Below, piece by piece: positions 19,950 through 46,901 of a stretch of DNA of 58,935 nt. Location of the stretch: contig NC_069000.1 of the NCBI RefSeq assembly GCF_001194135.2, positions 13,863,776-13,922,710 on the forward strand. Reading direction: 5' to 3'. The stretch's first letter is position 1. Each line of letters opens with the position of its first letter. Source of the stretch: Octopus bimaculoides (taxonomy: Eukaryota). A program made the position numbers and the translations under genes. The notes beneath the pieces were generated by a model. That model was not told the origin of the DNA and searched no databases. It saw nothing but the letters and a program-made list of their open reading frames with translations.

Positions 19950-19987
<38 letters not shown>

Positions 19988-20644: not shown

Positions 20645-21018
20645 ACAAACAAGACCACTCAGAGAGCACAAACCTCTGCCAAGGCAACACCAACGTCCCC
20701 TCAACAATTAGCCGGAAATGATTTTGAAAATGAGAACATCTGAAATAAACTCGACTGCTCTCACAAACGAGAATATTAAAAATGGACCTGACTGCACTCA
20801 AGAATTAAGCAAAAAATTAGGAAAAATAATCCAGAATCCTTGTCCAGTACTGGATCGATCCCAAAATCTAATCAGTTCATGCCAGTCAGGAAGCCAAACC
20901 TCCTTGAAAGTTTCATCCGAATCCATCAAGCGGTTCTTGAGATATCTTGTCAACAGACAGACAAACAAACAAACATGACTGAAAATAATACCGCCGCCTT
21001 AGTGAAGGCAGAGGTAAT
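20645..21018 (+). mobile_element. Helentron/DINE-1-like non-autonomous element (second copy 32520-32890 -, fragment 43835-43888)
   Basis: aagtttcatccgaatccatcaagcggttcttgagatatc core, (ACAA/ACAG)n microsatellite and a 3' GC-rich hairpin accgccgcctt-agtg-aaggcagaggt. Confidence 0.65.
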
Positions 21019-22659: not shown

Positions 22660-22990
22660 GAGGCAGAGAGAGTGAGTGAGTGAAAGAAGAGAAAGACTGA
22701 GTGAAACAAAGAGAGAGACAGAGAGAGTGAGTGAGTGAAAGAAGAGAAAGACTGAGTGAAACAAAGAGAGAGACAGAGAGAGTGAGTGAGTGAAAGAAGA
22801 GAAAGACTGAGTGAAACAAAGNNNNNNNNNNAAGAAGAGAAAGACTGAGTGAAACAAAGAGAGAGACAGAGAGAGTGAGTGAGTGAAAGAAGAGAAAGAC
22901 TGAGTGAAACAAAGAGAGAGACAGAGAGAGTGAGTGAGTGAAAGAAGAGAAAGACTGAGTGAAACAAAGAGAGAGACAGAGAGAGGGTAA
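22660..22990. repeat. 55-bp GA-rich tandem repeat, about 6 copies, collapsed across a 10-N gap
   Basis: Unit aaagagagagacagagagagtgagtgagtgaaagaagagaaagactgagtgaaac. Confidence 0.9.
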
Positions 22991-23220
22991 GGAAACTGAA
23001 GGGGGCATGGGAAATTTTCTGCCATTTTTTTTCAATGATATATATTACATTGTTTATTTCATAACATACTGGATATACTCTTGTTTTTCTGGGTTTTTTT
23101 TTATAGTTCATAATTACATTCACACAATTAGTCAGCATATAACATTATAATATACACCATTTTATCTTCATCAGGATTATTCTGACATAGCTAATCTTTC
23201 CCAAAATTTTCCACACTTCC

Positions 23221-23320
23221 NNNNNNNNNNNNNNNNNNNNNNNNNNNNNNNNNNNNNNNNNNNNNNNNNNNNNNNNNNNNNNNNNNNNNNNNNNNNNNNN
23301 NNNNNNNNNNNNNNNNNNNN
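23221..23320. other. Exactly-100-N scaffolding gap (left border of inverted block)
   Basis: 100 N counted; only one other gap in the window has this length. Confidence 0.95.
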
Positions 23321-23358
<38 letters not shown>

Positions 23359-25689
23359 ATATGTATACATCTATAACGTATGAGTAGCGCAGTCTGTTGT
23401 GAACATGGTTTTCTATACTTTGTCACAGCTCCCTTCCTTCCTTTTTAAGTGTGTCTGTTTATATATATATGCATTCGTAAATGCACGTGTCTGTAATTTT
23501 ATTTTCTATATATCTTTCTAAATAAACATACACATATACACTCACTCAAATATTATATATGAATATATTTTACACATACACACACACACACACAAATACA
23601 ATATATTTGAATCTTTACTTCGGAAATACTATAAAAACTACCTTTATAAAAAGTACATGTCTGAAGTACCAAGAGCAGATATCTTGGGTTGCATTGTCTG
23701 CACACATGGCAGGAATATCAGGTGCAATCACCCCTGCAAAGAGTCTTGATATTCAATATTCTATTAATATTCTTTTCTACTCAAGGCGCAAGGCCCGAAA
23801 TTTTTGGAGAGGGGGTCAGTCGATTAGATTAACCTCAGTACGCAACTGGTACTTAATTTATCGACCCTGAGAGGATGAAAGGCAAAGTAGACCTGGGCAG
23901 AATTTGAACTCAGAACATAAAGACAGACGAAATACCGCGAAGCATTTCGCCCGGCGTGCTAATGTTTTTGCCAGCTCACCGCCTTATTAAGTAAATAAAT
24001 ATTCTTTTCTACTCAAGGCGCAAGGCCCGAAATTTTTGGAGAGGGGGTCAGTCGATTAGATTAACCTCAGTACGCAACTNNNNNNNNNNNNNNNNNNNNN
24101 NNNNNNNNNNNNNNNNNNNNNNNNNNNNNNNNNNNNNNNNNNNNNNNNNNNNNNNNNNNNNNNNNNNNNNNNNNNNNNNNNNNNNNNNNNNNNNNNNNNN
24201 NNNNNNNNNNNNNNNNNNNNNNNNNNNNNNNNNNNNNNNNNNNNNNNNNNNNNNNNNNNNNNNNNNNNNNNNNNNNNNNNNNNNNNNNNNNNNNNNNNNN
24301 NNNNNNNNNNNNNNNNNNNNNNNNNNNNNNNNNNNNNNNNNNNNNNNNNNNNNNNNNNNNNNNNNNNNNNNNNNNNNNNNNNNNNNNNNNNNNNNNNNNN
24401 NNNNNNNNNNNNNNNNNNNNNNNNNNNNNNNNNNNNNNNNNNNNNNNNNNNNNNNNNNNNNNNNNNNNNNNNNNNNNNNNNNNNNGCCTACACTCAAGAG
24501 TTCCTACATACGCAATAACAACATACACTGGGTTCCTAGACCCAGTGGCCTCTCAGACAACTGCGTAGCATGTCTATGCTTTAAGACGTTAGTAGTATGG
24601 ATGTGTATGTGTGTATGTGCATTGGTTTACGTGATCTTTTGTATGTTTTGGAATGTGTGTGTGTGCAAGTGTGTGGGCTCATGCATGTGAACCTGCGCGC
24701 GTGTGTGTATGTGAGTGCGCATGTGTGTTAATGTTTAATTTTCTTCTCCACGTGTTTACAGGGATACTATGACAAGCAGGAACAGTAAAGATAAACCAGT
24801 TTAGGACGGTTTTAGATAGCGTAAAGTATATGTGTGCGTGCACGCGCGATAGAGACTTTGTAGTTATTTTAAAATTGCTTTTCATTAAGTTTATTTTGGT
24901 GTGGGTTTTTTCCAAGGTAGCTGTGTACTGTTATTGTGCCTCATGTGCATGTGTTTAGCATGTGATATACATTTGTTGCATTCTACAACGATGTCTAGTT
25001 ATGTATGTTTGTTTGTGTGTTTATGTTAGCTTCTGAAATAAATGTATAAGAACGCAGAATGCGTATGTGTGTTATTTTCTCAGAAAATAACACACATACG
25101 TGAGAGTAGTGTATGTTTTGTTTCTTTGATTGTTTGTATAGCATTTTCTCCTCTATATGCACACGCTTTTCTTGCGTGTGAGCATGTGCGAGCTTCCTGG
25201 GCGTGTCTTTGTGTCACTGTTCCGAGAATGTCTATTTGTGCGGTTGTGTACGTGTGTGAAAGTAGAGAAACATATATATACACGTGTGTAAGTTGTTAGG
25301 AAAAAAGCACGGTCTTAAAGAGATTCAATAGTCTCACTATTATATAGACGGGTAGTATATTCCTGGCTATGGTATAAAAGTGGTTAGAAAATTGCCATTG
25401 GTTTCGCCTCAAATATTAACTTGACAATATAGATGACTAATTACACATGCAGGTCATATACTACTCGACTATATAAAAGCGCGTGCATGTGCGCGCGTAT
25501 AGTCCAACAAATTGCTGTGAGTCAGAAAAAAGCAGCACTCGTAAATTGGGTTAATACAAAGGGTATATTGCGCAATATTTTTTATTGTACAATATACCCG
25601 TCATGGTACCTAATATCTGAGTACTGCTTTTTCTTGATTTATGAAAATTTACGGGACAACTGTGCTGGAGACGATTCTTAAACTCTGAA

Positions 25690-26030
25690 TGGATAAAGTA
25701 CGCAGTGGAAGGGCCATGCATGTTTCAACAAGATCCAGCACCTTCTCAAAATGCGCACGTATCCGAAGAATGGATGTCAAACAATCTTTACGATCATGAA
25801 ACAAACAAATCTGGGGCCTCAAAAACTCGTCAGCTTTAAAATCTTGTGGACCACGACGTTCAAAGTATGTTGGAAGGGAGACGCCCTAACAATTCTATAG
25901 TTTCACCTAATTGTTACTAATATCCAACTGACGTCTGAAATGAACAAGGACTGTTCAGTGCTGGCATGTCAACGATTCCAATCCTGCATTGATGCAATCA
26001 TTGAAGCTGAAGGCCTATCGAGGACATGCG
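25690..26030 (+). pseudogene. Tc1/mariner-superfamily transposase C-terminal remnant
   Basis: Fragments FQQDPAPSQNAHVSEEWMSNNLYDH and ACQRFQSCIDAIIEAEG; stops and frameshifts. Confidence 0.75.
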
Positions 26031-26954
26031 CTCAAATATTTTTTTTATTAAAATACATTTGGCGGGTCTTTTTTAATTTCTTCCAACCATTCGCATATTC
26101 TCAAATTTTCTGTTTGTTATCATGTCAACTCCAGCCTATCCACGGAACCATAAACAAATTTTTGAAAATCAAAGCAGAAAGAGGACCGTAAAAATTTAAT
26201 GAAAGACTATAAGAAAACATGAATTTTTGAAACCGAAAACATTACGAAACCTTGAATTCTGAAAAAAAAAAAAAAAAATGAATAAAATAATTTTTTCGGA
26301 TTTCTCTAAAAGAAATTAATTAAAGAAAACAATAATGAAATTAATTAGAGAAAACAATAAGGAAATGAATTTATTTCAGTTTTTTTTAATATATATATAA
26401 TGGAATACAATGAAAGAAACGGAATGTAATGAAAAATTTGGCGAGAGATTGCAATTGTTGTACCTGTGATGCGGTATTGTTGTAAGTGGGTCTCCTTTTA
26501 TCATAGTTATATTCAATGACAGCTGACTTAACTACAACCAGGCTTTCAAAATACAAATGTTACAAATTATTCTACTAAACCAATTTCTATTATTCAAGGA
26601 TAAAATGTTTAAATGCTGTCTCGTAGTTATTGCAGTTCAATTTTGGAGGCGGGGAAAAGAAAAAGTTCCATTACTCATGGCAAATATGCAAAAAAAAGGA
26701 AAATGTAGAATTAGATTAGAACTAAAATAGCTAGAATTTTCTTCGTTACATTCAGAAAAAATTTTCCACCATAACGTAAATACCATCAAATTTTTGATAA
26801 TTATACAATGAAACTTTCATAATCAACTACACATCGCTTAGTGCATATGAACACATCTACACAATTTAGAACAGTTTAGAATTTGTCATATGTCAATAGA
26901 AAAAAATAGTTAAATAAAAAGTGGTGTTACCATAAGTTTATCCACCCCTACATA

Positions 26955-27379
26955 CAGCACTGGATTAACCATAAAGCAAAATAAGCACGTGCTTAGGGCA
27001 TCAAGGGAAGGAAGGGGAACCACAGAAATGGTAAATGGTCTACAGCACAACAAAAGAAATCACTTTAAACTTGCTAAAATAATATTTGGGATGCCTTTAT
27101 CTATATTAAGTATAGATGCAGATGTGTTACCTAAGATTAATTTTGAGGATCTGATCAAAGACTTTGCAATTCAAAAATGTAGGAGGAAACTTTTCAAATA
27201 GAAATAAAGTGGAACTAGACAATAATAAACATTATTTTCCCTCTTACTGTTTTGTTTCATTTAGAAAAATAAAAATTTATTTTATGGTTATTGTTTATAT
27301 GTTGAATTTCATAATCTTTTATGGGAGCACCAAAATCTTTTAAGTGCTTAGGGCCTCGATGGGTCTTAATCTGGCCCTG
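26955..27379 (+). mobile_element. Non-autonomous hAT element retaining the transposase C-terminal tail
   Basis: Perfect 8-bp TSD cctacata (26947-54, 27380-87); imperfect TIR cagcactggattaacc / ggtcttaatctggccctg; LSILSIDADVLPKINFEDLIKDFAIQKCRRK. Confidence 0.88.
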
Positions 27380-27388
27380 CCTACATAC

Positions 27389-27430
<42 letters not shown>

Positions 27431-27910
27431 CATTTTATCTAGTTTCACCTCATGAGCTGTGGCCATGCTGGGGCACCATACACACACACACACACTGCCA
27501 CTTCATAGGTTACAACAATTTTTCCAGTTGATCCAATCAACAGAATAGCATGCTCATGCAATTAATGTGAAAGTGGCCGAGTACTCCACGATCATGCATA
27601 TGCTTCTTGTAGGTCTCAAGGAGATTCAGTGTGACAAAATGTGACAAGGCTGGCCCTTTTGAATTACTGGTACAACTCATTTTCACCAGCTGACTGAACT
27701 AGAGCAATGTGAAATAAAGCGTCTTGCTCAAGGACACACCATACCACTGGGAATTTAACTCACAACCTGGTGATCACGAGTTGAATACCCTAACTGGTAA
27801 GCCACACGCCTTATATATATGTGTGTATATATGTGTGTGTATATGTATACACACACATATATGTATATATACACACAGACACACATACATACATACATAC
27901 ATACATACAT

Positions 27911-28278
27911 GGTGGTGGTTGTCTACTCCTTACACAGAGTTTGACCACCTCCTGTACCTACACCTTAGCCCTTTCATGGCGTCTGATGTGGCTTTTTAAA
28001 CCAGACAGTGTTTTGAAAAAACACCCACACAGATTGCACCTCTGATTTGCACTACCAATACCTGCAGGTAAGTTCTGTTCATTGTGGATCCTAACATGTC
28101 TTTTAAGACCCCCATTGGATTTGCAAGCCCTCTGGCACACACCACATTCAAACGTGTGCACAGACATATAACCAGAATAGCTGGTTGAAGTTTGTTTTCC
28201 ATGGGTTCACAGGTGAGATTTGGGGCCCGCCAAAGACAGGCATGGTCTGTCATAGACTGTGCACACAAAAAGGTCCTT
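27911..28278 (-). mobile_element. 5'-truncated LINE (RTE-type) 3' end encoding three C2H2 zinc fingers
   Basis: One frame: FVCTVYDRPCLSLAGPKSHL*TH (stop 28207-09), FECGVCQRACKSNGGLKRHVRIH, RCNLCGCFFKTLSGLKSHIRRH, TAG at 27958. Then a short UTR and (ACC)n. The LINE assignment is inference. Confidence 0.6.
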
Positions 28279-28421
28279 GTTATTCACCTTCTCAATCTAT
28301 ACATACATGTAGCACATCCTCATCACTCTCCTCATTACTTGCATTATCACCACTATTACAAGTGCCATGTTCCAAGATTCCACCTCAAACTGTTTAATTC
28401 TTTTCTTTTCTTTGTCTGCAG

Positions 28422-28543
28422 GAGGTGCTTCTCTTGACCTGAATACAGTTGCACCGAAGCCATATCGCTGGATTTCCGATATAACCTGGTTGAATCTTGT
28501 AGAGTTGAGTAATTTGCCTCAGTTTTCAGCTATTTTGGAACAG
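28422..28543 (+). CDS. DNAH5: Dynein heavy chain, exon 4 of 11 (on opposite strand)
   Basis: [43 protein letters not shown] (48865) + GA gives Gly, reading FIKGGASLDL. ctgcag acceptor, GTAAT donor. Confidence 0.93.
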
Positions 28544-30831
28544 GTAATCTTTAGCAATTTCTATATTGTTATACTAAATATTTAGCATAAATAGTCTGGT
28601 TACATTATAAAAGGCACTGGTGCTGGTGCCACATAAAACTCACTGATGATGGTGCCATGTAAAAATCACTGGTGCTGGTTCCACATGAAAGGACTGGTGA
28701 TAGTGTCATGTAAAAAGCACCCAGTACACTTTGTGAAGTGATTGGCATTAGGAAAAGCATTCAGGCATAGAAACCAAGCAAAAACAAACAGACTATGGAA
28801 CCTGGTATGACCCCTGGCCTTGCCAGTTCCTGTCAACCCATCCAACCTATGACAGCATGGAAAATGGATGTTTGATATTGATGATGATAATGATGGAGAT
28901 GATGATGATAAACTAAAGTTGCATGAAGCAATGTAGAAAAAAATATATTGATGTAAAGTCATATTTAATACACTCGAGGGATACTCAGATATAGGGAAGC
29001 CTTTTGCTGTGCAAATAGGTTTGGAAGAAAATTCTCCTCCTTGATGACAGGTGTGAAAATATGTTAGGCTGTGAATGACTCACTGAATTGTAGGGATGTA
29101 TGCATTTCTGTGTTGTTATGCGTCATCAGTTATGAAATCTTCCTTTCACTATCTGAAAAGAATGGTTTGCTCTTATGTAAGAGCACAAATACTTGATAAG
29201 TACAAACAAATCATCCTTGCAGGGAGGGAAGCGATAGGAAGGAGGAGGAAGAAGAGGAGAAGAAGAAGAATTTGAAGAAGAAGAACTTTCTTATAAATAG
29301 CAGAAAAATCTACCTCAGCCTTAATAACATTCGACAATGTAGCCTCAGATCCCTAGTGTCTGAATACTTGTAAGTTTTCTCCACTAGACTCAAAAACAAC
29401 AGCAGTAGTAATAGTAACAACAATGAAGTAGTAGTAGTAGCATTAGCAGCAATAGTAGTAATAGTTTATATCATAAATAACATGTAAGAGACAAAGTTGA
29501 AGGGAAGAAATTAAATTTAAGTATATTAGGAGTGTACGTGAAGAATACTTTATGATGTTCCTTTTTTCAGTCTGTGTACATGTGTATGTATGTATATGTG
29601 TATGTATGTATGTATGTGTGTGTGTGTGGGGGGGGGGCTACATCACAGATCAAAGTGATAACAAAATCAACTGATTAATTAGATAAGAGGAAGAAGCAGG
29701 AAAATAACTGCATAAATGTGAGTCACTGTTAGAGAGCTGGCGGTGGATAAAGACAAAGCTGTAAGGGTGGGGGTGGTAATTTATGAAGACAAGGGACTAA
29801 TGAATGGAAAGAAGAAAAAAAAAAATTTAATGATTAGATAAGATATTGGTATAAAAACTTTGATAAGTTCTGTAGTGAGGTCAATGAGCAAGTAAGCGGT
29901 GGTGGAAAGTAGTTTGATAAAATGATAATGAATATTTAGTTTGATGTAGTGAAGTGAAGTGCAGGTGTAGATTCAGTTAAAAGAAATTTATGTAGACAGC
30001 CAGCAAGAGTTTAAATTGGCATTACAGGAAAATGGTTTCATCATCATCATCATTATCATATAAGGTCTGTTTTCCACGCTGGCATGGGTTGGATGGTTTT
30101 GACAAGAGCTTGAAAGGCCATGAGTCATACCAGTCTGTTTTGGCGTGGTTTTTACAGCTGGATACCCTTCCTAATGCCAAACACTTCACAGAGTGTACTG
30201 GGTGCTTTTTGCATGGCACAATCACCAGTGCTATTTACGTGGCACCAGAGAAAGTTCTGATGGATATATGTTAATTGTGGTGTGGATCCTAGATCCACAT
30301 GTGCCAATTGTAACTGAGAGTAAAACTAAGTGAGGTTGGTTACAAGTTAGTTAAAGTTAGTAGGTTGGTAGATTTTGTTGTGGTGTTGATGTAAAATACT
30401 TATATCAATAAAAGAGTTGTGTAAGAATAAGATTAAGTGTGAAAGAGTGTAATAAGGGAGCAAGATTAGTAGGAATTATAATGAAAATTATTAAAAGGAG
30501 ATAAATAAATTTAATCTGCAAGCAAAGATTGCAGATAGAGGCAGAATTTGAATTTACAGTGGATATCTTTTCAGGATTCTATTTGTACAAAAAGAAAATC
30601 CGTTTTTGATATTTGTTAAAAAGATGTCCTTTGGTAAGAAAAATATAGATGTTCTCAGATGTACATAATTTACAAGGTCTTTGTTCTTAGACAAGATGCT
30701 CCATTTGAAGCAGGATAATGAAGTTTTATTATTATTTCTATTAGGAATTAGCAAGTAATAATCATTGCTTTTATATGGTGATGATGATGATACAAATTGT
30801 ATTTCTTAATTTCATGTCATTTGATTGGTAG

Positions 30832-31153
30832 GTCACCAGGAACGAAAAGCAGTGGAAAGCTTGGTTTGACAAACGATGTCCTGAAGAAGAAATGATTCCA
30901 GATGGTTACAGTACATCACTGGATACTTTCCGGTGTCTGCTGCTGGTTCGTTGCTGGTGTCCTGACCGTACATTACCACAAGCAAGAAATTATATTGCTG
31001 ATACACTTGGTGATGTATACGCTGAAGGTGTCATTCTTGATTTGGCAAAAGTGTGGGAAGAAAGTGATAGCCGTACACCATTAGTTGGAATGCTTTCAAT
31101 GGGAGCAGACCCCAGTAGTAATATCGAAGCGCTTGCTAAGAAACATAAGATTG
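30832..31153 (+). CDS. DNAH5: Dynein heavy chain, exon 5 of 11 (on opposite strand)
   Basis: [13 protein letters not shown]...[20 protein letters not shown]...[21 protein letters not shown]. Phase 0 in, phase 1 out; GTAAG donor. Confidence 0.95.
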
Positions 31154-32059
31154 GTAAGCCTTTGAACTTTAGATGTTATATAATAAAATCTGTATAACAA
31201 ATGACCATACAAAATTTTGGCTTTTTCCAGTTCATTGAACTTAGTTTTCCTACAAAGATAAATGACTATTTGGCCAATTCCTTCATGTGCTGGCTTTAGA
31301 TTTCACTTTAGTACCCCTGTACTGCTTAGTGCATAGGGCACCAAGATTCCTCCACCAAATTCACATCATGGCTACTCTTGCACATCCATTCCATGCAATG
31401 TTGACTGTCTTTGACTTGACTTTGTGTTGCAATGTTGACTGTAATCTTAAAATGTCTGCCACCAACTGTTCTTTGGCTTTTCCTTTTTATGTCTGGTGAC
31501 AAGTGGTGCGCAAACAGTAGTAAAGGTTTGACTATTTGGTAAATTTGACCCCACCCCTGCGCCTCCTTTTTCCAAACAAAAATAATGGGTTTCCGGCATA
31601 TTAGGAGGTCAGGGTACTTGATTCCACGCAAAAAATCTGAATCATTATTTTCCGTAGTGAAAATCGTGCGGGTGAAAGCATCGAAATTTACCTACTATTC
31701 TTTTCAGCAACTTTTGAAGGTGCTTCATTAAGCAAAGGTAATTGCAACTATCCTTAACCTGTCAAACAATTGTACTGTATTACCATTTGCTGAGTGAGTC
31801 TTTCTTTGTTCTCAGCTCCATCATAGGCTTTCATTTGTGTGAACTCCATAAGACATTTTTCTAATTTCTTTTACGGTTTATTGACCTCCTTTCCATTTCT
31901 GTTTTGTTTAGGTCCTGTAAATTCTAAGTAATGCATCACTGTTCTAGTTACAAACTTTCAACATCCTCAGAGAGCGCTATATTCTGTGTATCCTACTGCT
32001 TTGTATTATCTTCTCATGAACTCATTCACTTTTATATTTTCCTTCTTCCAAACATGAAA

Positions 32060-32412
32060 GTGTATGGCTCAGTGGTTACAGTGCCAGGCTCACAATCATG
32101 AAGTACTGAGTTTGATTCCCAGACCGGGCTGTGTGTGTTGTGTTCTTGAGCAAGACACTTTATTTCATGTTGCTCCAGTTCACTCAGCTGTAAAAATGAG
32201 TTACAACATCACTAGTGCCAAGTTGTATCCGCCTTTGCCTTTCCCTTGGGTAGTATCAATGGTGTGGAGATGGGGGGGGGGGCAGGTATGCATGGGCAGA
32301 CTACTGGTCTTCCATAAACAACCCTGCCCAGAGTTGTGCCTCGGAGGGTAACTTTCTAGGTGCAATCCTATGGTCATTCATGACCAAAGAGGTTTTTTAC
32401 CCTTTACCCTGT
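32060..32412 (+). mobile_element. tRNA-derived SINE family F ending in tttaccc repeats (second copy 36095-36432)
   Basis: atggctcagtggtta...gagtttgattcccagaccgggctgtgtgtgttgtgttcttgagcaag shared between copies. Confidence 0.8.
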
Positions 32413-33848
32413 CCCATAAAATGAGTGCTACAGATGTCTTGGTAGTGATGTAAATTTATTATACAAAGATGTACAAAAAGACAGTGACCAAGACACATTC
32501 TCAGTTATCATTTTACATTATTACCTCTGCCTTAGCAAAGGTGGACGTATTGTTTTCAGTTGTGTTTCTTTGTTTGTTTGTCCATGGACAAGATATCTCA
32601 AGAACCGCTGGATGGATTTTGATGAAACTTTCAGGGATGTTTGGCCTCGTGACTGGCATGAGCTGATTAGATTTTGGGATTGATCTGGCACTGGACAAGG
32701 ATTCTGGATTATTTTTCCGTTTTTTTAAATTCAATTTTTCAGAGTAGTTGGGTTCATTTTTAGTATTCTTGTTTGTGAGAGCAGTCGAGTTTATTTCAGA
32801 TATTCTCATTTTAAAAGTCATCTCCGGCTAATCGTTGGGAGGACATTGGTGTTGCCTTGATGGAGGTTTGTGCTCTCTGAGTGCACTTGTTAATAATGAG
32901 TTTAAGGCAGTGAGCTGGCAAAATTGTTAGCACACCAGGTAAAATACTTAGCAGTGAGAAAACTCCACTGCTACCCACTGACCTCGATGACCTTAAACAC
33001 TGAACAACAACAGCAATTAACTCAGTGTATTGTGATATGATGATGTGCATCTGGGAGGAATTCTGCAGGTGGTCGCCAGATCAAATACTTGTAAGAGAAG
33101 AGATAAATGTTGATTGTGAGTAAATACTTGTGACTTAGCTGGAGTATTCTATTGCTTTTCCATATTAAAATATTGCCTGATGAAATCAGTTCATTTTTTT
33201 TTTAATTACCCTGTATTATAAATTCACATTTCTATCTTGGTTTAATGACTAAGAGTCAATACAATGATCGTGAAAAATTTGGGTTTTTAATGTATGACAA
33301 AAGATCATTTAATGTTTTCTGCCAATCCAGGCTGTAAGCAAAAAGGTAGAAGTATGAAATACTCTTCTGAATTTTAACATCGCACTTCATCTGTACTTGA
33401 TATTTCCTGAAGGGAGTTTGTTTTTATTTTAGAAATCAGCTTTAACGTTATAGGATGTTTTCTGTTTATTATTTTTTTTTTAGATATGCATACACACATG
33501 CATGTGTCCACACACACACATGTACATGTGCACACACACACACACAAATATATATATATATATACAAGCACATATCAATTCAAATACATACATACGTTTC
33601 AGATGTACGCACACAGACCACACCACACACACATTTATGCTTACAAAAACATCAATTCAGACATACACGTAAAGATATTCGTGCATGCACACACACACAC
33701 ACAGACACTTGTACACAACAGACACACTCTCACAAGTATTTTGCAAAAAGATACACATCAATTCACACACACACACACATACACACATACACACAAGAGT
33801 TCTTACAATATTTTCTGATGTTTATACATAAGTCTTATTTTCTTTTAG

Positions 33849-34075
33849 AGTGTCGTGCCTTATCAATGGGCCAAGGGCAAGAAGTACATGCACGCAGGTT
33901 GCTCCATCAGGGCTTCCAACAAGGAGGTTGGCTACTGCTACAGAACTGCCATTTAAGTCTTGATTTCTTAACAGAAATCGTTGAGACAGTTTTGGAAACA
34001 GAAAATGTGAACTCGCAATTTCGTCTTTGGGTTACCACCGAAGTCCACCAAAAATTTCTTATAAATCTGTTGCAG
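33849..34075 (+). CDS. DNAH5: Dynein heavy chain, exon 6 of 11, AAA6 (on opposite strand)
   Basis: AG-CRALSMGQGQEVHARRLL...GGWLLLQNCHL...FRLWVTTEVHQKFLINLLQ. Canonical AAA6 motifs SMGQGQ and LQNCHL. Confidence 0.95.
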
Positions 34076-34322
34076 GTAATTATTGATTATTTATGGTAGT
34101 TCTGATCCTAGAAATATATATATATATAAATATAGGCACAGGAGTGGCTGTTTGATAAGTAGTTGTAAGTGTGGTAAGTAGCTTGCTTACCAACCACATG
34201 GTTTCAGGTTCAGTCCCACTGCGTGGCCACCTTGGGCAAGTGTCATCTATTATAGCCTCGGGCTATAGTGGATTTGGTAGACAGAAACTGAAAGAAGCCC
34301 ATCGTATATATATATATATATC

Positions 34323-34353
<31 letters not shown>

Positions 34354-34414
34354 GCTTGTGTGTCTGTGTTTGTCCCCCCACCATCGCTTGACAACTGATG
34401 TTGGTGTGTTTATG

Positions 34415-34588
34415 TAACATATATGTATGTATTTTTGTATATATATATATATATATATACGTATATATATATGTATATATATGTATATATACATACATAT
34501 ATATATATATATGTATATATATGTATATATACATACATATACATATGCATATATATATGTATATATACATACATATGTATGTATATAT

Positions 34589-34629
<41 letters not shown>

Positions 34630-34639
34630 NNNNNNNNNN

Positions 34640-34673
<34 letters not shown>

Positions 34674-34690
34674 CCACACGCACACACACA
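34415..34690. repeat. Compound (TA)/(CA) microsatellite (representative of many)
   Basis: Direct reading; contains a 10-N gap. Confidence 0.95.
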
Positions 34691-35393
34691 TTTATATCAT
34701 GTGATTAATAGAAAATATCAGCATTTCGGGAACAATTGAATATCTTGTCCTTAAATCTCTAAATCTCTAAAAATATACACACCATTTAATGTTCTGCCTA
34801 TGCCATTATGGCATGAAACTATCCTTGAAATTTGTTTCGAGATTCCTACTGACGTGAGATCAGAGGAAATGTACCAGCTAACGTAGATATGTCCGGAACA
34901 CTTGAATATATTGTCACTCACAGATAACATTGTTATGCATATATCATTGGGACAGTTTGGCTGTGTAGCAAGTAGTTCAGGAGCATAAGTTTCTGGGTTC
35001 ACTCCTACTGCATGGCACCTTGGGTGAATGTCTTCTACTTGAACCTTGAGGCAACCAAGGCCTTCTGAATGGATTTGGTGGATGGAAACTGAAAGAAGCC
35101 TGTCAAATATACATATTTATATATATATATGTCTGTGTGTGCATGTGCTTTTGTGTCTCTGTCTGTCCCCCACCATTGTTTGTCAATTGGTGTTAGTCTG
35201 TTTACATCCTCATAACATAGTGGTTCGGCAATAGAGAGCAATGGAATAAGCACCAGGCTTAAAAATAATTACTGGTGTCAGTTCATTTGATGAAAGTTTT
35301 TCAAAGTGGTGCCCCAGCATAGCCACAGTCTAATGGCTGAGACAAGTAAAAGATGAAATATAAAAGATATGTATAAAGTATTTTGTGTGTGTG

Positions 35394-35432
<39 letters not shown>

Positions 35433-35433
35433 A

Positions 35434-35464
<31 letters not shown>

Positions 35465-37140
35465 TTCCCTGTCTATCTGTCTGTCTCTCTTTCTCATGAT
35501 GGATAAATAATAGTTTCAGATGCTGACACAAAGCCAGCCATTTCGGGTGATGGTATAAGTGTCGATTACATCACCCCACCCCCCTCAATATGCAACTGGT
35601 ACCTATTTTATCAACCATGGAAAAATGAAAACCAAAGTTGACCTCAGCAGAATTTGAGCTGAGACTGTAAAGATGTACAAAATGCTGCTAAGCATCTTAA
35701 CCCCGCTTACTTAATGAACCTGCCAGCTTGCTCCCTTTGGGGAATAAACAATATCAGTAAATTTTCCAACTTTGTTATATTTTGTTATATATATGTTATA
35801 TATATGCCAAATCAGACTGGAGCCTGGTGTTGCCATCCGGTTTCACCAGTCCTCAGTCAAATCGTCCAACCCATGCTAGCATGGAAAGCGGACGTTAAAC
35901 GATGATGATGATGATGATGATATGTGTGTGTTTGTGTTTGAGTCATTATGAAAATATTATTATGTGAAATGAGACGATGTAAAAACTGATAGTTTTTCCA
36001 GTGAGTGACAAGGTCATCCAGCAATGTAATATTTGGTAAAAACAACCTACTTTGTTTCTGCTGCTACAGCTGTAGTTTTTTTTACATGGTTTGTGGAGGC
36101 ACATGGCTCAGAGGTTAGAGCATCAGGTTCACAGTCATGAAGTAGTGAGTTTGATTCCCAGACTGGGCTGTGTGTGTTGTGTTCTTGAGCAAGGCACTTT
36201 ATTTCGCATTGATCCAGTTCATTCCACTGTTGAAATGAGTTGCAACGTCACTGGTGCCAAACTGTATTGGCCTTTGCTTTTCCTTTGGATAGCATTGGTG
36301 GCGTGGAGAAGGGGGGCTGGTATGCATGGGTGACTGTTGGTCTTCCATAAACAACCTTGCTCAGACTTGTGCCTTGGAGAGTAACTTTCAAGATGCAATC
36401 CCATGACCGAAGGGGGTCTTTACCCTTTACCCAGTCAAATGGAATAAGCTGTGTGCATTGTAGTTGCAGGCTCTTTGAGTTTGATGAGATTGATTTGTCT
36501 GATGGTTTTGGTGGAACAAAAAAACATGTTTGATTCTACAGGAACAACTTATGATAATAGATTTCCAGAGGTGTAATACTCCGTAGAAGAACGGTCAGAT
36601 AAAAGTGATTATTTCTGGGTTTGGAAAAGGAAGAAATACTGGAGACAAGAATGGATGAATGGGTGAAGAGAATTTTGGCGAAGGGGTTGCATAATCAGTT
36701 CCGAAGTGCAGTAACCAATCTAGTTGTGATACAAAAGGTGACTTCAAACAAATTAGTCACATTTTTTAAATTTTTTGTTTTTCTTAACTTACTGAAGACC
36801 TAAATTTCATGGCAAAATCTATTACAGAGTTGCAGTAAAAGTACAAAACTAGAAAAACAATTCTGGTCTTCCAAGTTTAAGGCTCAGTAAGACAAACAAA
36901 AAAAACAAAAACACATGTAACTTTGTCAGTTTATATAATGACTTTCTCCCATGATTGTCTAATTGTTTTAATACAATGGATGAAAGACTCAGCGAAAAAC
37001 CACGTAGCATCATGCCGCTGCTACAGTGATCTGAAGCTTGACGCCAAAAACGGTATATTTATTTTGAATTCAAACTATATTAGATCTGTCCTCGCTTTTC
37101 ACCTCCTTGCCTTAAATGATTAATTCAATTTCTCATTATA

Positions 37141-37338
37141 CAAGGGGGTGCTGAAAAGTTCCTGACTTTGTATAAAAGAATATACTGGAGGGTCAGTTAA
37201 TTATGATTTTATTCAACATATTTCCCTCTTAGATTCACTTTCTTATTGCAGCAGTCCTTCAGTTTTTTTAGAAGGTTGGGCCTCAAACCAGGCCTTTCGC
37301 AATACCCTTAAAACCAGGAATTTTTCAGCACCCCCTTG
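37141..37338. mobile_element. Mariner-derived MITE (same family; third copy ~55548-55748 in reverse orientation)
   Basis: TA-caagggggtgctgaaaagttcc...tttttcagcacccccttg-TA. Confidence 0.9.
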
Positions 37339-38036
37339 TACATTTTGTTGTGAAGGTCATTATGCCAGCATAATAACAAACATCAGTTTTATTTCACTTC
37401 TTTAATTATTAGTAGTAAATTAGTTAATCATTTAACCAATTACCTAATCAGTTCTTTGATTAATCGTTCAGTCAATCAATCAATACCCTCTCTGCACTAG
37501 ATCTGGAGCAGAGAGGGAAAGTCATGAAGGGTGATAAAAGGACTTTGACAAATCTGATTGGCAGAACAATTAATCAGACAATTAATTAGTTAATTGGTTA
37601 AATGGCTAATTAATTGTCTAATAATAATAATCCTGTCTACAATAAGCACAAAGCTTGAAATTTTCGGGAGGTGTTTCATTGATTACATCAACTTCAGTGC
37701 TCAACAGGTACTTATTTCGTTGCCTCTGAAAGGATTTCGCAGAATTTGAACTCAGAATGAAATGTTAATAAGCATTTTGTCCAGAACAATAACATTTCTG
37801 CCAGTCCACTGCCTTTAATTGATTAATGATAATAAAAGAAGTGATATAAGACCAGTGTATGTGTTTATTGTAATGACCCTCCCTAGGTACAACAAACTCT
37901 GTTTCAGCATGTTTTCACATTGGGAATCTTGCAAACCAAATGGTAAAACAAAAAATTATAACACACCTCTATTAAAATTGACATGTCTAAGAAATGAATA
38001 TCTTTTTTTTTTTCACATTTTTATTTTATTTTTCAG

Positions 38037-38309
38037 ATATCCATAAAATTCACAAATGAACCACCTCAAGGGATCAAGTCAGGTCTTAAACGATCTTACA
38101 CAGCCCTTTCACAGGATTTTCTTGATGTTACCAACCTACCACAGTGGAAGCCTTTGATTTTTGTTATAGCTTTTCTACATAGCATTGTCCAAGAACGTCG
38201 GAAATTTGGACCACTTGGTTGGAATATTCCTTATGAGTTCAACACTTCGGATTACAATGCCAGCATCCAGTTCATACAGAACCACTTGGATGATATTGAT
38301 ATCCGGAAG
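38037..38309 (+). CDS. DNAH5: Dynein heavy chain, exon 7 of 11 (on opposite strand)
   Basis: [21 protein letters not shown]...[27 protein letters not shown]...IDIRK. 273 nt, AG/GT. Confidence 0.96.
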
Positions 38310-38845
38310 GTAAGCAGTTCATATGAACATCATGTTTTAAGATATATATATAAATATATATATAGGCGCAGGAGTGGCTGTGTGGTAAGTAGCTTGCTTA
38401 CCAACCACATGGTTCTGGGTTCAGTCCCACTGTGTGGCACCTTGGGCAAGTGTCTTCTTCTATAGCCTCAGGCCGACCAAAGCCTTGTGAGTGGATTTGG
38501 TAGGTGGAAACTGAAAGAAGCCCGTCGTATATATGTATATATATGTGTGTGTGTGTGTGTGCATGTTTGTGTGTCTGTGTTTGTCCCCCAACATTGCTTG
38601 ACAACCGATGCTGGTGTGTTTACGTCCCCATAACTTAGTGGTTCGGCAAAAGAGACCGATAAAATAAGTAGTAGGCTTACAAAGAATAAGTCCTGGGGTC
38701 GATTTCTTCGACTAAAGGCGGTGCTCCAGCATGGCCACAGTCAAATGACTGAAACAAGTAAAAGAATAATAAAACTTTCCATAAATATTTAACTTTCAGC
38801 CTAAAATGTATTTCTTACTTTTTTTTTTTCTTTTGTATATCATAG

Positions 38846-39108
38846 GGAGTAAATTGGTCCTGTGTTCGCTACATGATTGGAGAAATTCAATATGGTGGTC
38901 GCGTGACAGATGATTTTGATAAACGCCTCTTAAACACATTTTGCCGGAGTTGGTTTGGAGAAAACATGTTTCAGACAAACTTTGAACTCCATAAAGGCTA
39001 TATAATACCCAAAGGAACTAAGCTGCAAGATTATCTCGATTATATTCAGAGCTTACCAAGTACAGACAGCCCAGAAGTATTTGGGTTACATACAAATGCT
39101 GATATTAC
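38846..39108 (+). CDS. DNAH5: Dynein heavy chain, exon 8 of 11 (on opposite strand)
   Basis: [29 protein letters not shown]...[20 protein letters not shown] donor at 39109, phase 2. Confidence 0.96.
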
Positions 39109-40092
39109 GTATGTATTAATTGTCATTTCATTTCATTTAAAACTATTTGCAGAGAGAGTTCTTGAACAAATGTAAATAAAAAAGAAATGCAGCATATACA
39201 GAATGCCCACCACTACCACCACAAAAAAAAAAAAAAAAGTGCACATAGTGAATGATTATAAAGTCAGTGTTTTTTTTTTTTTCATTTTCAGAATTTAATA
39301 GTCTACAGACAAAATTTAATATTTTTATGAATGCCTGTTTTGAAGCTGATAATCATTTTTCTCCATGCACGTTGATAACATGAAGTAATGGAATTGCAAA
39401 CATCCCTGTACATTTATTCAGTTTTTGCATGTGATCTTTTTCACTTGTTGCCCTCAATTCATCAACTGTTACTGGTTTTGTACAGTAAACTTTATAGTTT
39501 AAGTATCCCCATAAAAAATTCTAGTGGTGTAAAGTCTGGTGAATGCAGTGAATATTCTACAGAATCTCTTTGTCTGTTTGACAAAAACCCATCAAAGTAG
39601 GGCCTTATGTTGCTATGGTAGTGTGGGAGCACCCCCATCTTGCTGAAATAAAACTATATCTTCAAAATCTTCTTGAATGTTTGATGTGATAGATTGTTGT
39701 AGTACGTTCAAGTAGATGGATCCCGTCACAATTACATCAAAAAGAATGCTTAAAATAATTATTATGATGAGAAAAGACATCATTCTGTTACTTCAGGTAA
39801 AGTTCCTTTATAACATACTGATTCTCAAGTCCCTGGCAGGTGCAATTGTGTCGCTAATTGAGACATTTAATTTAAATGTAGCCTCATTACTCCGAGCACA
39901 CTGGGCAAAATGTCTAGCAACAGTTCTTGCAACTCATTACTTTCTGAGTTCAAATCCTGACAAGGCCAGCTTTGCTCTTCATCTTCTTTGAATGAAAAGA
40001 ATAAAATACTAGTCAAGTACTGAAGTCAGTGTTATTGACTTGCCTACTTGCCTCAAAATTGCTGGTTTTGTGTCAAAATTAGAAGGAATTAT

Positions 40093-40133
<41 letters not shown>

Positions 40134-41260
40134 CATACATATGAATGTCTGTTTGTATCTATCAATATATATATATATATATATATATACTCACTTTTAC
40201 TTGTTTCAGTCATTTGACTGCGGCCATGCTGGAGCACCGCCTTTAGTTGAGAAAATCGACCCCAGGACTTATTTTTTGTAAGCCTAGTACTTATCCAGTT
40301 TCCGTCTACCAAATCCACTCACAAGGNNNNNNNNNNNNNNNNNNNNNNNNNNNNNNNNNNNNNNNNNNNNNNNNNNNNNNNNNNNNNNNNNNNNNNNNNN
40401 NNNNNNNNNNNNNNNNNNNNNNNNNNNNNNNNNNNNNNNNNNNNNNNNNNNNNNNNNNNNNNNNNNNNNNNNNNNNNNNNNNNNNNNNNNNNNNNNNNNN
40501 NNNNNNNNNNNNNNNNNNNNNNNNNNNNNNNNNNNNNNNNNNNNNNNNNNNNNNNNNNNNNNNNNNNNNNNNNNNNNNNNNNNNNNNNNNNNNNNNNNNN
40601 NNNCTGGGGTCGATTTTCTCGACTAAAGGCGGTGCTCCAGCATGGCCGCAGTCAAATGACTGAAACAAGTAAAAGTGAGTATATATATATATATATATAT
40701 ATATATTAATAGATAATTCCAGGAGTGAATAGAAAAATTCTGAAACTTGAGGGGATGGGCCCCCCCATATATGGATTCTAATGGCACAGGGGCCCACTTG
40801 CCATCAAGCAAGCTGTCAACCTGGCCAGTCTACCACTGGTCATGAGCCAGAAACTCTAACCACTTCTGTGTGTATGCAAACATGTGAGAGAGAGAGAGAG
40901 AGAGTGTGAGAATATCTAATTATAGTAAGGAGAGAGGTTTGGAAAATTTTTTTTGTCAAGAAAGTATGTCACAATAATCTTGATGGACAAGATAAAACCA
41001 TGCTGAGTAACTGTGAACAAAACAAAGAACAATAACAACAATAGTTGAATAAACATACATCATGCATGACAACAAATAAACAATGTACTGAGTATTTCTC
41101 AAGAGGAAGAATGTTTCCCATCTTCTCTTTGAGTTCTCTTTTCTCTCTTTCTTCTTCTTCTTCCCCTCCGTCTCTCTCTCCTTCTCTCCCTCCCACTTTC
41201 ATTCTCTCATTGTGTGTTTAGTCTGTGAATGTTTATTCTATGAACATGTCTCGCTCTCTC

Positions 41261-41325
<65 letters not shown>

Positions 41326-41831
41326 TTGTGTTACCTACTGAGTCATTTCTCATTACACTGAACGGAAAATCCCAGTTACATGAAAATATTTTTAATGTCA
41401 TCTATCATTAAATCATATTAACTACAGTGTTTATAATTTAAAATCATTAATGCTAGATCTAGTTTGTTTTCATTCTTCTTTTTTTTTTTTTTTGAGAAAT
41501 TTACAAGATCTTGTCTTGCATTTAGTAGGGAAAGTAAAAAAAGTAACATTTTTCCAATTTATTCTACACTTTTTAGCATTACGCACACATATGCGCACGC
41601 GCACACACACACACACATGCATGCACTTGCACACATGCACTCACATGTATGCATACATATACACATACAGGCACACACATGCATTCATGCACGCATGTGC
41701 ATACAGATGCACATAGTCACACATATGCACACACAGATGCATGCACATACAGGCACGCACAGCTGTGCGCATGCACACACATACACACAATGTAATTTTA
41801 AGAAATTTTGAAATTACATGCCTAAATTTAA

Positions 41832-42441
41832 CCCTTTAGCATTTAAATCAGCCATGTTGTTGTTGTTGGCGCTCCATCGCTTACGACATCGAGGGTTCCA
41901 GTTGATCCGATCAACGGAACAGCCTGTTCGTGAAATTAATGCGCAAGTGGCTGAGCACTCCACAGACACGTGTACCCTTAACGTAATTCTCGGGGATATT
42001 CAGCATGACACAGTGTGACAAGGCTGACCCTTTGAATTACAGGCACAACAGAAACAGGAAGTAAGAGTGAGAGAAAGTTGTGGTGAAAGAGTACAGTAGG
42101 GTTCGCCACCATCCCCTGCCGGAGCCTCAGGGAGCTTTAGGTGTTTTCGCTCAATAAACACTCACAACACCCGGTCTGGGAATCGAAACCGCGATCCTAT
42201 GACCACGAGTCCACTGTCCTAACCACTGGGCCATTGCGCCTCCACTAAATCAGCCATATACAGCCCTAATATTCAATTTGTTTTATGTTCAAATGGACCA
42301 GATCTGGCCTCTCACACATACTCTAAAATGTCATTTTAAAAATAAACAATCACATCATTGAAGTCTGAAAGCTCTGAGATAATTCATGATTAATTCAAAA
42401 CAATGTGAATAAATAATCATTACATTTGAACACTAAAAGGG
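41832..42441. mobile_element. piggyBac-like MITE interrupted by SINE C (uninterrupted copy 22118-22336)
   Basis: TTAA-ccctttag ... ctaaaaggg-TTAA; the 22118 copy shows the empty site. Confidence 0.75.
41856..42245 (-). mobile_element. Full-length SINE family C with 12-bp TSD (others 17097-17427, 21640-21960, 56561, 57281)
   Basis: tRNA-like head gtggaggcgcaatggcccagtggttagg, (CAA)n tail; TSD taaatcagccat at 41844-55 and 42246-57. Confidence 0.92.
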
Positions 42442-42610
42442 TTAAACTGTCTATGTACCTTCATATCCAACCTAAATATCACATCTACCCTACAATATCA
42501 TTCTAGAAATAAACAATTATGAGACAATGCATAATCAATCCAAAACAATGCAAATGAATGAACATTAGCACAGGAGTGGCTGTGTGGTAAGTAGCTTGCT
42601 TACCAACCAC

Positions 42611-43248
42611 CAGTCACTGTTCGGCCCCAAAAAGTTTCATTTGTGAGATGTGATAGCAAAGAAGAGCACACATTCACTCTCTGCATGCGATTAGACTCGA
42701 AAAGTTTGTGAGGAACCCACTGACCCAATTTGCTGACTTTTCTGATGGCACGCAGGTGTCACTGAATGGTTGAATGACCAAATCCAAGCTTCTCTGCTAG
42801 TTCCTCAACAGCTGCGATGGGATTTTGTTCCACCAAGTTTTGCAGAATGTCCTCATTGAGCTCTACTGATCTTCCAGGATGAGGCTTATCCGCTAGGCTT
42901 GTAGTTTCCAGCTCAGAATTTCTGGAACCACCATTGACACTGGCTTACGCTTATTGCCCAATCTTCATATACTGCATTAATATTCCTTGTACTTTCTGTT
43001 ATGCTGTCGCCTTTATTGAACCCATAATGCAAAATATGCCGAATATGCTCCTTTATCACTTCCATTATAGCTTTGAAAAATATAACTATTAAAATTGAAC
43101 TGCACTCTTCTTGCAATAAGAATAAGGTTTGAGGTAAAATTACTCCCTGCTTTTATAGCAAGTTGATCCAGGTAGTTATTCTTCCCCCCTCTGACTTTTA
43201 ATTCATGCAACTGAAAAAAAAACCCATATTATTTATGGGATGACCCAA
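42611..43248 (-). pseudogene. Decayed mariner transposon (second family)
   Basis: TA-ttgggtcatcccataaataat TIR at 43248; KEHIRHILHYGFNKGDSITESTRNINAVYEDWAISVSQCQWWFQKF; breaks at RTVTG (first catalytic Asp region). Confidence 0.85.
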
Positions 43249-43888
43249 TACTAACATATTTATAGGGGAAGAAAAAGAAGGGAAAAACCCATAATTAGCC
43301 CACCGAAGAAAAAAATAAAAAGAAAAAATATGGTGGGGATTAAGCAGCAACAGATGATGGCAGTGGGGTAGGTGGGTGGGTGTAATAACAGGTTGTACAC
43401 CCTAGAACAAATTACACAAGCGTTGCCACGGAGAATGGTCAATGACACTAACTATTCAGCCAGCGCACTACTTAATGAAATAGTAGGTTTGAAGGTTCTC
43501 AGATGCAAAGAAAATTCACACCTGATTTCTTTATGCTTGTCCTACTCACTCTTCTCTTCCCACTCCCCACTGTCTCTTGTTCTCTTTCTTTCTCATTGTA
43601 TTTGATCACAAAACTCACATGTACTTTGTATGTGTATCACTCACATTTCTTAATTGTTTGTTGTCTCGACTCTTCCTATTTTATCGAAAGGGAAATTCCA
43701 CTTAAGTGGGGGTTTTTTGAAGGTTAGGAACCATCATAATTATGATGACATGAATTCCTTATCAAACGTTTCAATTTTACAAATCATGTAAAGACCTGTT
43801 GCACACACAAACACACACACACACACAACCACACACAAGCAACACCAACGTCCACTCAATGATTAGCCAGAGATGATTTTTAAAATGA

Positions 43889-43988
43889 NNNNNNNNNNNN
43901 NNNNNNNNNNNNNNNNNNNNNNNNNNNNNNNNNNNNNNNNNNNNNNNNNNNNNNNNNNNNNNNNNNNNNNNNNNNNNNNNNNNNNNNN
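43889..43988. other. Exactly-100-N scaffolding gap (right border of inverted block)
   Basis: 100 N counted; it truncates a Helentron-like repeat at 43888. Confidence 0.95.
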
Positions 43989-43994
43989 ACAACA

Positions 43995-44031
<37 letters not shown>

Positions 44032-44715
44032 CCAGCTTGCAAAACACATTTTAGCAAAAAAAACTCCCACATATTGGGCCCTGGACAAAACTTCTCGTAT
44101 AACATTGCGACACACACAAGCTGATATCTAATATGCACTGTGTATGTGTAAAACAACTGCATGCATGGAGACACACATACAAACCCTATACAACCATAAG
44201 AAACAAATTTAAAAAATCAAACCAATCACACATACATAATTTAGAAAAACACAAGCACATTCATAGTCATATACACTAAGTCTAGTCACATTATCTCTCC
44301 TAATCTTGTCAATGTTTTAAACATGTTCTTTCCTTCTCAAATCTAGTGATTTCCATTATTCAGTGTGGCTTTAATATTTGCACATGGAATTTTTTTTCTG
44401 ATATATTTTTTAAAAATTTTATTTTCGCTATTTTTTCATTTTTACTCGTTCATACTTCTGATGAAGAGTTTATGTCAAAAATATTAAGGTATGAGACTAA
44501 CGATAAAAAAAAAAACTTTTATTTTATCTTTTCTTGTTTTACATGTTGCTATTTTCATGTTTACACACACACAAAAGATGGGTAATAGTAACACAAAAGT
44601 AAAGAAAAAATACAATAAAGCCTTTTGTTAATTGGTCTCACGCCCAAAGTAATAAAAACATCTGCTTTTATCTCAGATGTTTTATGTGTGTGTGAATTAT
44701 ATATGCATGTATATT

Positions 44716-46582: not shown

Positions 46583-46901
46583 GTGGAGGCGCAATGGCCC
46601 AGTGGTTAAGGCAGCAGACTCGAGGTTGGAGGATCACGGTTTCGATTCCCAGACCAGGCGTTATGTGTGTTTATTGAGCGAAAACACCTAAGTTCCACTA
46701 GGCTCTGGCAGGGGGTGGTGGCAACCCCTGTTGTACTCTTTCACCTCCACTTTCTCTCATTCTTTCTTCCTGTTTCTTGAGTAAAGCTGTGATGGACTGG
46801 CGTCCCGTCCAGCTGGGGTGGGAACATATACGCCATAGAAACCGAGAAACCGGGCCCATGAGCCTGGCTAGGCTTTAAAAAGGCACAAAAGAAAGAAAGA
46901 A
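46583..46901 (+). mobile_element. SINE with family C head but a different 3' body
   Basis: Matches family C up to cttcctgtttct (~46777), then gctgtgatggactggcgtcccgtccagctgggg...aaagaaagaaa. Confidence 0.75.

Follow-up and report, generated by a model that had tools for sequence, protein, structure and literature searches.

In the stretch of Octopus bimaculoides DNA analysed here (58,935 nucleotides, hereafter the window), a block of 20.6 kb has very probably been mis-oriented by the scaffolder, and the dynein exons that it places on the opposite strand would then be an assembly error in a gene that is itself intact and colinear. The exons of this gene join without interruption of the reading frame, the gene is colinear in two related species, and the splice sites used at one of the two strand switches are orthologous to those of an ordinary intron. 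The first-pass annotation of the window had likewise ranked mis-orientation as the most likely explanation, a ranking that now finds support in an O. sinensis contig, in an O. vulgaris gene model and in the literature on scaffolding.

Exon organisation of the dynein gene

Eleven exons, delimited at every internal boundary by AG and GT, encode the C-terminal 891 residues of a DNAH5-type dynein heavy chain, and when joined they provide 891 codons and a stop codon, with no internal stop and no frameshift. The minus strand carries exons 1-3 and 9-11, whereas exons 4-8 belong to the plus strand and fall within the block 23321-43888. On the minus strand, E1 (57178-57074), preceded by an AG, in phase 0 at its start and equivalent to O. 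vulgaris residues 3346-3380, is followed by E2 (51830-51577) and by E3 (49055-48865), the latter ending in ...FLTFIK plus a single G before the donor GTGATT, which is orthologous to position 4720 of the O. sinensis contig VCDQ01003366.1 (L001). On the plus strand, E4 (28422-28543) begins with GA GGT GCT (GASLDL) behind the acceptor ...CTGCAG, orthologous to L001 position 19658, and E5 (30832-31153), E6 (33849-34075, carrying the AAA6 motif SMGQGQ) and E7 (38037-38309) lead on to E8 (38846-39108), which ends in ...NADI plus AC before the donor GTATGT. Back on the minus strand, the acceptor ...TTTCAG of E9 (19794-19425) precedes A TAT TCA (T-YSS), and the series is completed by E10 (17762-17610) and by the last coding exon, E11 (14372-13977, the stop codon included in this range), ending in ...LLCDIK and the stop.

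At both cross-strand joins the interrupted codon is rebuilt exactly. At the E3/E4 join, the minus-strand sequence ...TTCATTAAAG/gtgatt meets the plus-strand sequence ...ctgcag/GAGGTGCT, and G+GA gives Gly in FIKGGASLDL; at the E8/E9 join, the plus-strand sequence ...GATATTAC/gtatgt meets the minus-strand sequence ...tttcag/ATATTCAAGT, and AC+A gives Thr in NADITYSS. Flipping of the block 23321-43888 yields join introns of nominally 10,077 and 8,306 nt, the 100-N placeholder in each not being a measured length. What the first-pass annotation had claimed about these features holds throughout: the minus, plus, minus layout, with its outer coordinates (57178 to 48865, 28422 to 39108 and 19794 to 13977); the exact rebuilding of the Gly and Thr codons; the 891 residues free of stops and frameshifts, now in the eleven-exon model; and the colinear minus-strand gene obtained on flipping, the introns of which had been put at about 10.1 and 8.3 kb.

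Identity of the encoded protein

Judged from its sequence, the gene is that of a DNAH5-type outer-arm axonemal dynein heavy chain, ordinary and conserved. The alignment with human DNAH5 (residues 3738-4624) takes in all 891 residues from end to end and has no indel over the central 675, which implies colinearity far beyond chance and leaves no exon hidden in a gap. Human DNAH5 is also the best match (1372 bits), the inner-arm chains DNAH10, DNAH2 and DNAH3 reaching about 465 bits at most. The Pfam domains follow one another in the normal order, AAA_9 (1-58), Dynein_heavy with the D6 P-loop (304-413), AAA_lid_11 (444-583) and Dynein_C (590-888), and the C-terminal succession required of a DNAH5-type chain, the end of AAA5, AAA6, the lid and Dynein_C, is present. 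In its colinearity and domain order the protein resembles both human DNAH5 (PDB 8j07 chain n0; gamma-type outer-arm) and O. vulgaris CAI9737797.1, and what distinguishes the window from the DNAH5 family is the apparent strand switch, which is not a family property. A protein search with a 589-residue query spanning a join gave no match above 71% identity among the matches listed, which were mostly long proteins of other phyla, and an exact look-up of the last-exon open reading frame (13980-14408, minus strand) gave no match. The window covers only the last (3') quarter of a DNAH5-type gene.

Gaps and edges of the inverted block

The changes of strand fall only across unsequenced 100-N joins and not in contiguous sequence. 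Runs of exactly 100 N occur in the window at two places only, 23221-23320 (the left join) and 43889-43988 (the right join), each having the fixed size of a scaffolding placeholder, and the listing of all N runs thus upholds the earlier siting of the inverted exons between the only two such gaps. The remaining eleven runs comprise 10 (four times), 82, 141, 277, 347, 406, 829 and 890 N. Between the two joins, positions 23321-43888 would represent one first-tier scaffold of 20,568 bases, reversed relative to its neighbours, carrying E4-E8 and containing internal sized gaps of 406, 10 and 277 N; these (24080-24485, 34630-34639 and 40327-40603) are intronic, at distances of 3937, 555 and 1219 nt, respectively, from the closest exon boundary. 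All exons in the window are free of N runs, the nearest run (17428-17568) being 42 nt away from E10. Both junctions consist of N placeholders, with (GT)n and (AT)n microsatellites at the contig ends and no read-through of a breakpoint.

Colinearity in related octopuses

The O. sinensis contig L001, which comprises 30,783 bases and no N, matches the window with 82-93% identity. Its positions 885-9007 correspond to the right flank, running from 50523 down to 44041 of the window on the minus strand, and its positions 10975-27303 correspond to the start of the block, on the plus strand from 23352 up to 34343. In this gap-free contig the right flank hence runs into the block start, that is, into the flipped configuration across the right join. 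The orthologues of window positions 44041 and 23352 are separated in O. sinensis by about 1.97 kb made up of (AT)n microsatellites, SINE copies and palindromic repeats, and on either side of the right join homology with L001 reaches the microsatellites that end both contigs; the block end and the edge of the left flank had no unique match in L001. A single cis intron of L001 has, at its two ends, the orthologues of the E3 donor and of the E4 acceptor, flanking intron bases included. Relative to O. sinensis, 289 codons of E3-E6, which include three of the five block exons, give a dN/dS of 0.08 (dS = 0.16), a value indicative of strong purifying selection and thus of a functional gene.

In O. 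vulgaris, the protein CAI9737797.1 is 97.1% identical to that of the window (867/893) with no indels, and its single-strand gene model, which extends over 352 kb on a 73.5-Mb chromosome of GCA_951406725.2, includes all eleven exons in order and spans both joins. For the left join (23221-23320) the coverage consists of this protein model only and not of aligned DNA, and a protein query composed of E8 and E9, across the second join, found no octopus protein. Synteny with other Octopus assemblies, proposed earlier as a check, is accordingly colinear in O. sinensis at the right join and in the O. vulgaris model at both joins. We infer that the arrangement is colinear in the sequenced animal itself.

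Probable origin of the inverted block

Reversal of the block restores the full colinearity of a conserved gene, with eleven exons, 891 codons and matching phases. The present arrangement very probably arose in a two-tier assembly, in which a short-read assembly would have produced scaffolds with sized gaps and a proximity-ligation scaffolder of the HiRise type would then have chained these scaffolds with fixed 100-N joins. The first-tier scaffold 23321-43888 would have broken off at microsatellites inside two long introns and would have been set in the right position in the wrong orientation, and this reversed placement would be the reason why its five exons are seen on the plus strand. The gene in the animal would be a colinear minus-strand gene spliced in cis, with nothing out of the ordinary at the RNA level.

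Such an origin accords with what is known of scaffolding. Dovetail/HiRise writes 100 Ns at each join that it makes, without gap sizing (PMC5545040), and in Hi-C scaffolding orientation errors are concentrated in short contigs, local error rates with short-read contigs being 4-12% overall and misoriented short contigs affecting gene prediction (PMC7672694). Between them these two papers bear out the earlier statement that scaffolders insert 100-N joins and mis-orient small pieces. The chromosome assembly of O. bimaculoides was obtained by applying HiRise to the 2015 shotgun assembly as it stood, without closure of gaps (PMC9068888 supplement), and comprises 713,915 contigs (PMC10700109); from the gap pattern in the window, we infer that the assembly analysed here is a HiRise product. 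The block resembles known orientation errors of Hi-C/Chicago, HiRise and 3D-DNA scaffolding in being a piece of about 20 kb that lies between fixed-N joins, correctly placed yet reversed, with a broken gene model as the outcome. It departs from the known proximity-ligation errors in no respect.

Alternative explanations

Were the present orientation true, the consequence would be either a null DNAH5 allele or a remarkable double trans-splicing, and the evidence leaves little room for either; a real inversion and trans-splicing, taken together, are improbable. Inversions on the megabase scale are reported between O. vulgaris and O. bimaculoides (PMC10700109), and the sequence as given does show such an arrangement. 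A genuine inversion of the five exons, in the species or in one haplotype, giving rise to a broken dynein allele, would nevertheless need both of its breakpoints exactly where orientation rests on the scaffolder alone. The comparison genomes belong to other species (dS about 0.16), and lineage- or individual-specific breakpoints could sit in the two unassembled stretches, but at the right join, the one that is testable, O. sinensis homology extends to the very edges of both contigs. In an inverted gene, cis-splicing from E3 to E9 would skip 1207 nt, shift the frame and encounter a stop 37 codons later, with loss of AAA6 and of the C-terminal domain. The outer-arm dynein would thereby be reduced to a null allele, at odds with a dN/dS of 0.08 (289 codons of E3-E6) and with the intact frame of 891 codons. 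This conflict makes a fixed inversion very unlikely, such that only a recent heterozygous allele would fit, and we regard the inversion as a whole as decidedly unlikely. In humans, loss of DNAH5 leads to ciliary dyskinesia.

Orientation is relative, and the data show only that the block and its flanks disagree. The block could in principle be the correctly oriented part and the two flanks the misplaced ones, both inverted and swapped, but this would demand that two pieces be flipped and exchanged as against one piece flipped, and we consider it hardly probable; it would in any case still be an assembly artefact, with the same biological conclusion.

The mod(mdg4) gene of Drosophila has an antisense arrangement that is established in the genome sequence and serves alternative 3' exons. 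A process of this kind, in which the orientation is real and two trans-splicing events join a plus-strand pre-mRNA containing E4-E8 between two minus-strand pre-mRNAs, has a next to negligible probability in the octopus: the phases match, canonical splice signals are present at the two cross-strand joins and the gene is clearly under selection, but a flipped piece would produce matching phases just as well, trans-splicing leaves the coincidence with the 100-N joins unexplained, in O. sinensis the E3/E4 splice sites flank a normal cis intron, and colinearity is seen in the O. vulgaris gene as well. With colinear relatives, trans-splicing would have to be a very recent novelty, for which an essential gene would have needed two new promoters as well as two trans-splicing reactions; if true, it would be a case of recently evolved, double trans-splicing of internal exons in an essential motor gene. 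The likeness to mod(mdg4), namely exons of one mRNA on both strands in compatible phases, is superficial, since the octopus arrangement is absent from two congeners, involves internal constitutive exons and coincides with scaffolding joins.

Consequences for annotation

If, as we consider very probable, the block is a flipped scaffold piece, the biology is unaffected, and the window would contain an ordinary conserved outer-arm dynein and not a real strand-switch feature. Annotations on the present assembly, on the other hand, would be expected to contain a DNAH5 model that is split, truncated or devoid of about 402 residues (AAA6 and the lid). Errors of the same type are probably common at small first-tier scaffolds flanked by 100-N joins, and phase-exact exons that become colinear when flipped would offer a cheap genome-wide means to find and correct such pieces.

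Repeats at the joins

A transposon or repeat cut by the 100-N joins, with halves that match only after the flip, was looked for at the joins and was not found. Only dispersed repeats are common to the flanks, in direct orientation at 21641-22309 and 41889-42427 and in inverted orientation at 46583-46777 and 42245-42050, and they carry no orientation information. In the flipped configuration, the right flank, which starts with ACAACA(AT)n, would adjoin the block at its (CA)n end, an abutment that is not evidence when taken alone and is suggestive of a compound microsatellite.

Dynein exons and the two joins

The coding exons were located by stop-to-stop ORFs together with tblastn using the Octopus vulgaris dynein, and their boundaries were set by the AG/GT requirement and by best agreement with the O. 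vulgaris protein. In the resulting model E1 (57178-57074), E2 (51830-51577) and E3 (49055-48865) lie on the minus strand, E4 (28422-28543), E5 (30832-31153), E6 (33849-34075), E7 (38037-38309) and E8 (38846-39108) on the plus strand, and E9 (19794-19425), E10 (17762-17610) and E11 (14372-13977, stop codon included) on the minus strand. Joined, the eleven exons form one open frame of 891 codons plus stop, free of frameshifts and internal stops, reproducing the coordinates and 891-aa length of the first-pass annotation. The codons which it had described as rebuilt at the strand changes are likewise recovered: Gly at E3/E4 (E3 ending ATT AAA G before GTGATT, and CTGCAG preceding E4 GA GGT GCT) and Thr at E8/E9 (E8 ending GAT ATT AC before GTATGT, and TTTCAG preceding E9 A TAT TCA). 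The block 23321-43888, lying between two 100-N joins, contributes about 402 of the residues (1207 nt), comprising AAA6 and its lid.

As judged by homology, the gene encodes an outer-arm axonemal dynein heavy chain of DNAH5 type. The match to human DNAH5 reaches 1372 bits against about 465 bits or less for inner-arm chains, and the Pfam domains AAA_9, Dynein_heavy (D6 P-loop), AAA_lid_11 and Dynein_C follow in normal order. All 891 residues align end to end with DNAH5 3738-4624, the central 675 without indels (3772-4446), while tblastn covers O. vulgaris dynein residues 3344-4236 completely and consecutively, at 867/893 identity and again without indels. Because both the DNAH5 alignments and the run of O. 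vulgaris residues are complete, the gaps conceal no dynein exon.

The top-scoring solved chain, PDB 9fqr chain I3 (4730 residues, 1377 bits), gives the end-to-end alignment of a DNAH5/DNAH8-type dynein heavy chain, yet is named 'Cilia and flagella associated protein 57'. Since the names of several further 9fqr chains are equally unfitting for dynein-length sequences, the chain labels of this entry look shifted.

Arrangement in other octopuses

A short query over the E3/E4 join retrieved, at 99% identity, the Octopus sinensis protein XP_029655398.2, encoded on contig VCDQ01003366.1 (assembly GCA_006345805.1; 30,783 bases, no N), itself 82-93% identical to the window in nucleotide sequence. Contig positions 885-9007 align in minus-strand sense with window 50523-44041, which is right-flank sequence with E3; positions 10975-27303 align in plus-strand sense with window 23352-34343, which is block sequence from the point where it becomes unique, with E4-E6. 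On this pattern the right flank in O. sinensis runs on into the start of the block, which is the flipped configuration. Homology ends only at contig-end microsatellites, (AT)n at 43989-44040 and (GT)n at 23321-23351, and the interval between the two matches consists of 1.97 kb of (AT)n tracts, SINE copies and palindromic repeats, the kind of sequence that breaks short-read assembly. One ordinary cis intron of this contig has ends orthologous to the E3 donor and the E4 acceptor, adjacent intron bases included. Alignment to the contig found no unique match for the block end or for the left-flank edge, both of which would be expected there were the present arrangement ancestral.

The left join is covered, at the level of a protein model, by O. 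vulgaris CAI9737797.1, which clusters with XP_029655398.2 and derives from the chromosome-level assembly GCA_951406725.2. This model of 4236 residues is a single gene, all on one strand, that occupies 352 kb of a chromosome of 73.5 Mb, and holds both joins, the first as …FLTFIKGGASLDL…, with every window exon in order.

The O. sinensis orthologue is fragmented too, the 30.8-kb contig being a separate record and XP_029655398.2 a 270-residue partial model, so that this annotation is also without an intact DNAH5.

Origin of the orientation

The block is very probably a mis-oriented scaffold piece and not a biological feature. This reading, preferred in the first-pass annotation, is borne out by the O. 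sinensis arrangement, the cis intron and the single-strand O. vulgaris model. A genuine inversion in the octopus is improbable, as both breakpoints must then land exactly where the scaffolder alone decided orientation. Over E3-E6 (289 codons) the comparison with O. sinensis yields 28 synonymous and 9 non-synonymous differences (dS 0.163, dN 0.013); the dN/dS of 0.08 shows strong constraint on the gene since the split, reported at 34 My (PMC10700109), with which the measured divergence fits. With the present orientation and cis splicing, E3 is computed to join E9, skipping 1207 nt and shifting the frame to a stop 37 codons on. A fixed inversion would thus have let the remaining exons decay, and such decay is absent; given the intact frame and low dN/dS, any inversion must be recent. 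A mirror-image artefact, in which the block is right and the flanks are wrong, is more doubtful still, requiring two errors rather than one, and would leave the biological conclusion unchanged. Trans-splicing across a real orientation has hardly any chance of being correct, since it also demands a pair of new promoters and a pair of trans reactions, and this in an essential gene which a congener cis-splices at identical sites.

The worth of mis-orientation as a finding lies in an assembly correction, namely reverse-complementing 23321-43888; the DNAH5 model in this assembly will be broken.

Gaps and assembly structure

The window contains 13 N runs, two of them exactly 100 long (23221-23320 and 43889-43988) and the others of 10, 10, 10, 10, 82, 141, 277, 347, 406, 829 and 890. 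This coexistence of sized gaps with fixed 100-N runs suggests two assembly tiers, sized gaps first and a fixed placeholder later. None of the 13 runs overlaps an exon; the nearest lies 42 nt from E10, and within the block three runs are separated from their closest exon boundaries by 3937, 555 and 1219 nt. The O. bimaculoides chromosome assembly comprises 713,915 contigs (PMC10700109). For short-read contigs local orientation errors of 4-12% have been reported, worse with shorter contigs and said to hinder gene prediction, and Hi-C contacts orient short pieces least reliably (PMC7672694), the class to which this 20.6-kb block belongs.

A purine-rich 55-nt tandem repeat at 22655-22985 (99-100% matches) is broken at 22822-22831 by a 10-N gap, some 240 nt away from the left join; because the sequence on either side is nearly identical, the assembler may simply have stuttered in the repeat here.

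Neighbouring gene and repeats

Convergent with the dynein 3' end is a plus-strand gene at 412-6964, whose long exon ORF (3875-4666, +) matches Pfam DUF3754 (E 3e-17) and is TMEM143-like. ORFs 412-687 and 6680-6964 (+) resemble further exons, with no Pfam match, and an 829-N gap (5054-5882) falls inside its span. A tandem array at 786-1583, built of 46-nt sub-units with higher-order periodicity at 184/356 nt (89-91% matches), yields spurious ORFs of some length in several reading frames.

Decayed remnants of a Mos1/mariner transposase lie at two places, 42916-43152 (-), inside the block and some 0.7 kb away from the right join, and 58102-58347 (+), with HTH_48 at E 1e-17 and 8e-7. An 82-codon ORF at 27961-28206 (-), 216 nt upstream of E4 on the opposite strand, carries two C2H2 zinc fingers (E 8e-10); the probable source of this fragment is a transposon or the C2H2 family, which is expanded in octopus. 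A weak, inverted match (82%) joins window 27918-28221 to O. sinensis contig positions 29444-29744. The left flank and the block have about 670 nt in common, in direct orientation (21641-22309 and 41889-42427, 94% over 285 nt), with a third, inverted copy at 46583-46777; these copies belong to a dispersed repeat family uninformative on block orientation. Copies of a dispersed, SINE-like repeat, about 430 nt long and present in either orientation, lie at 38342-38774 (between E7 and E8), 48208-48632, 11359-11557 and 34169-34415, with at least 8 copies at 81-91% identity in the O. sinensis contig.
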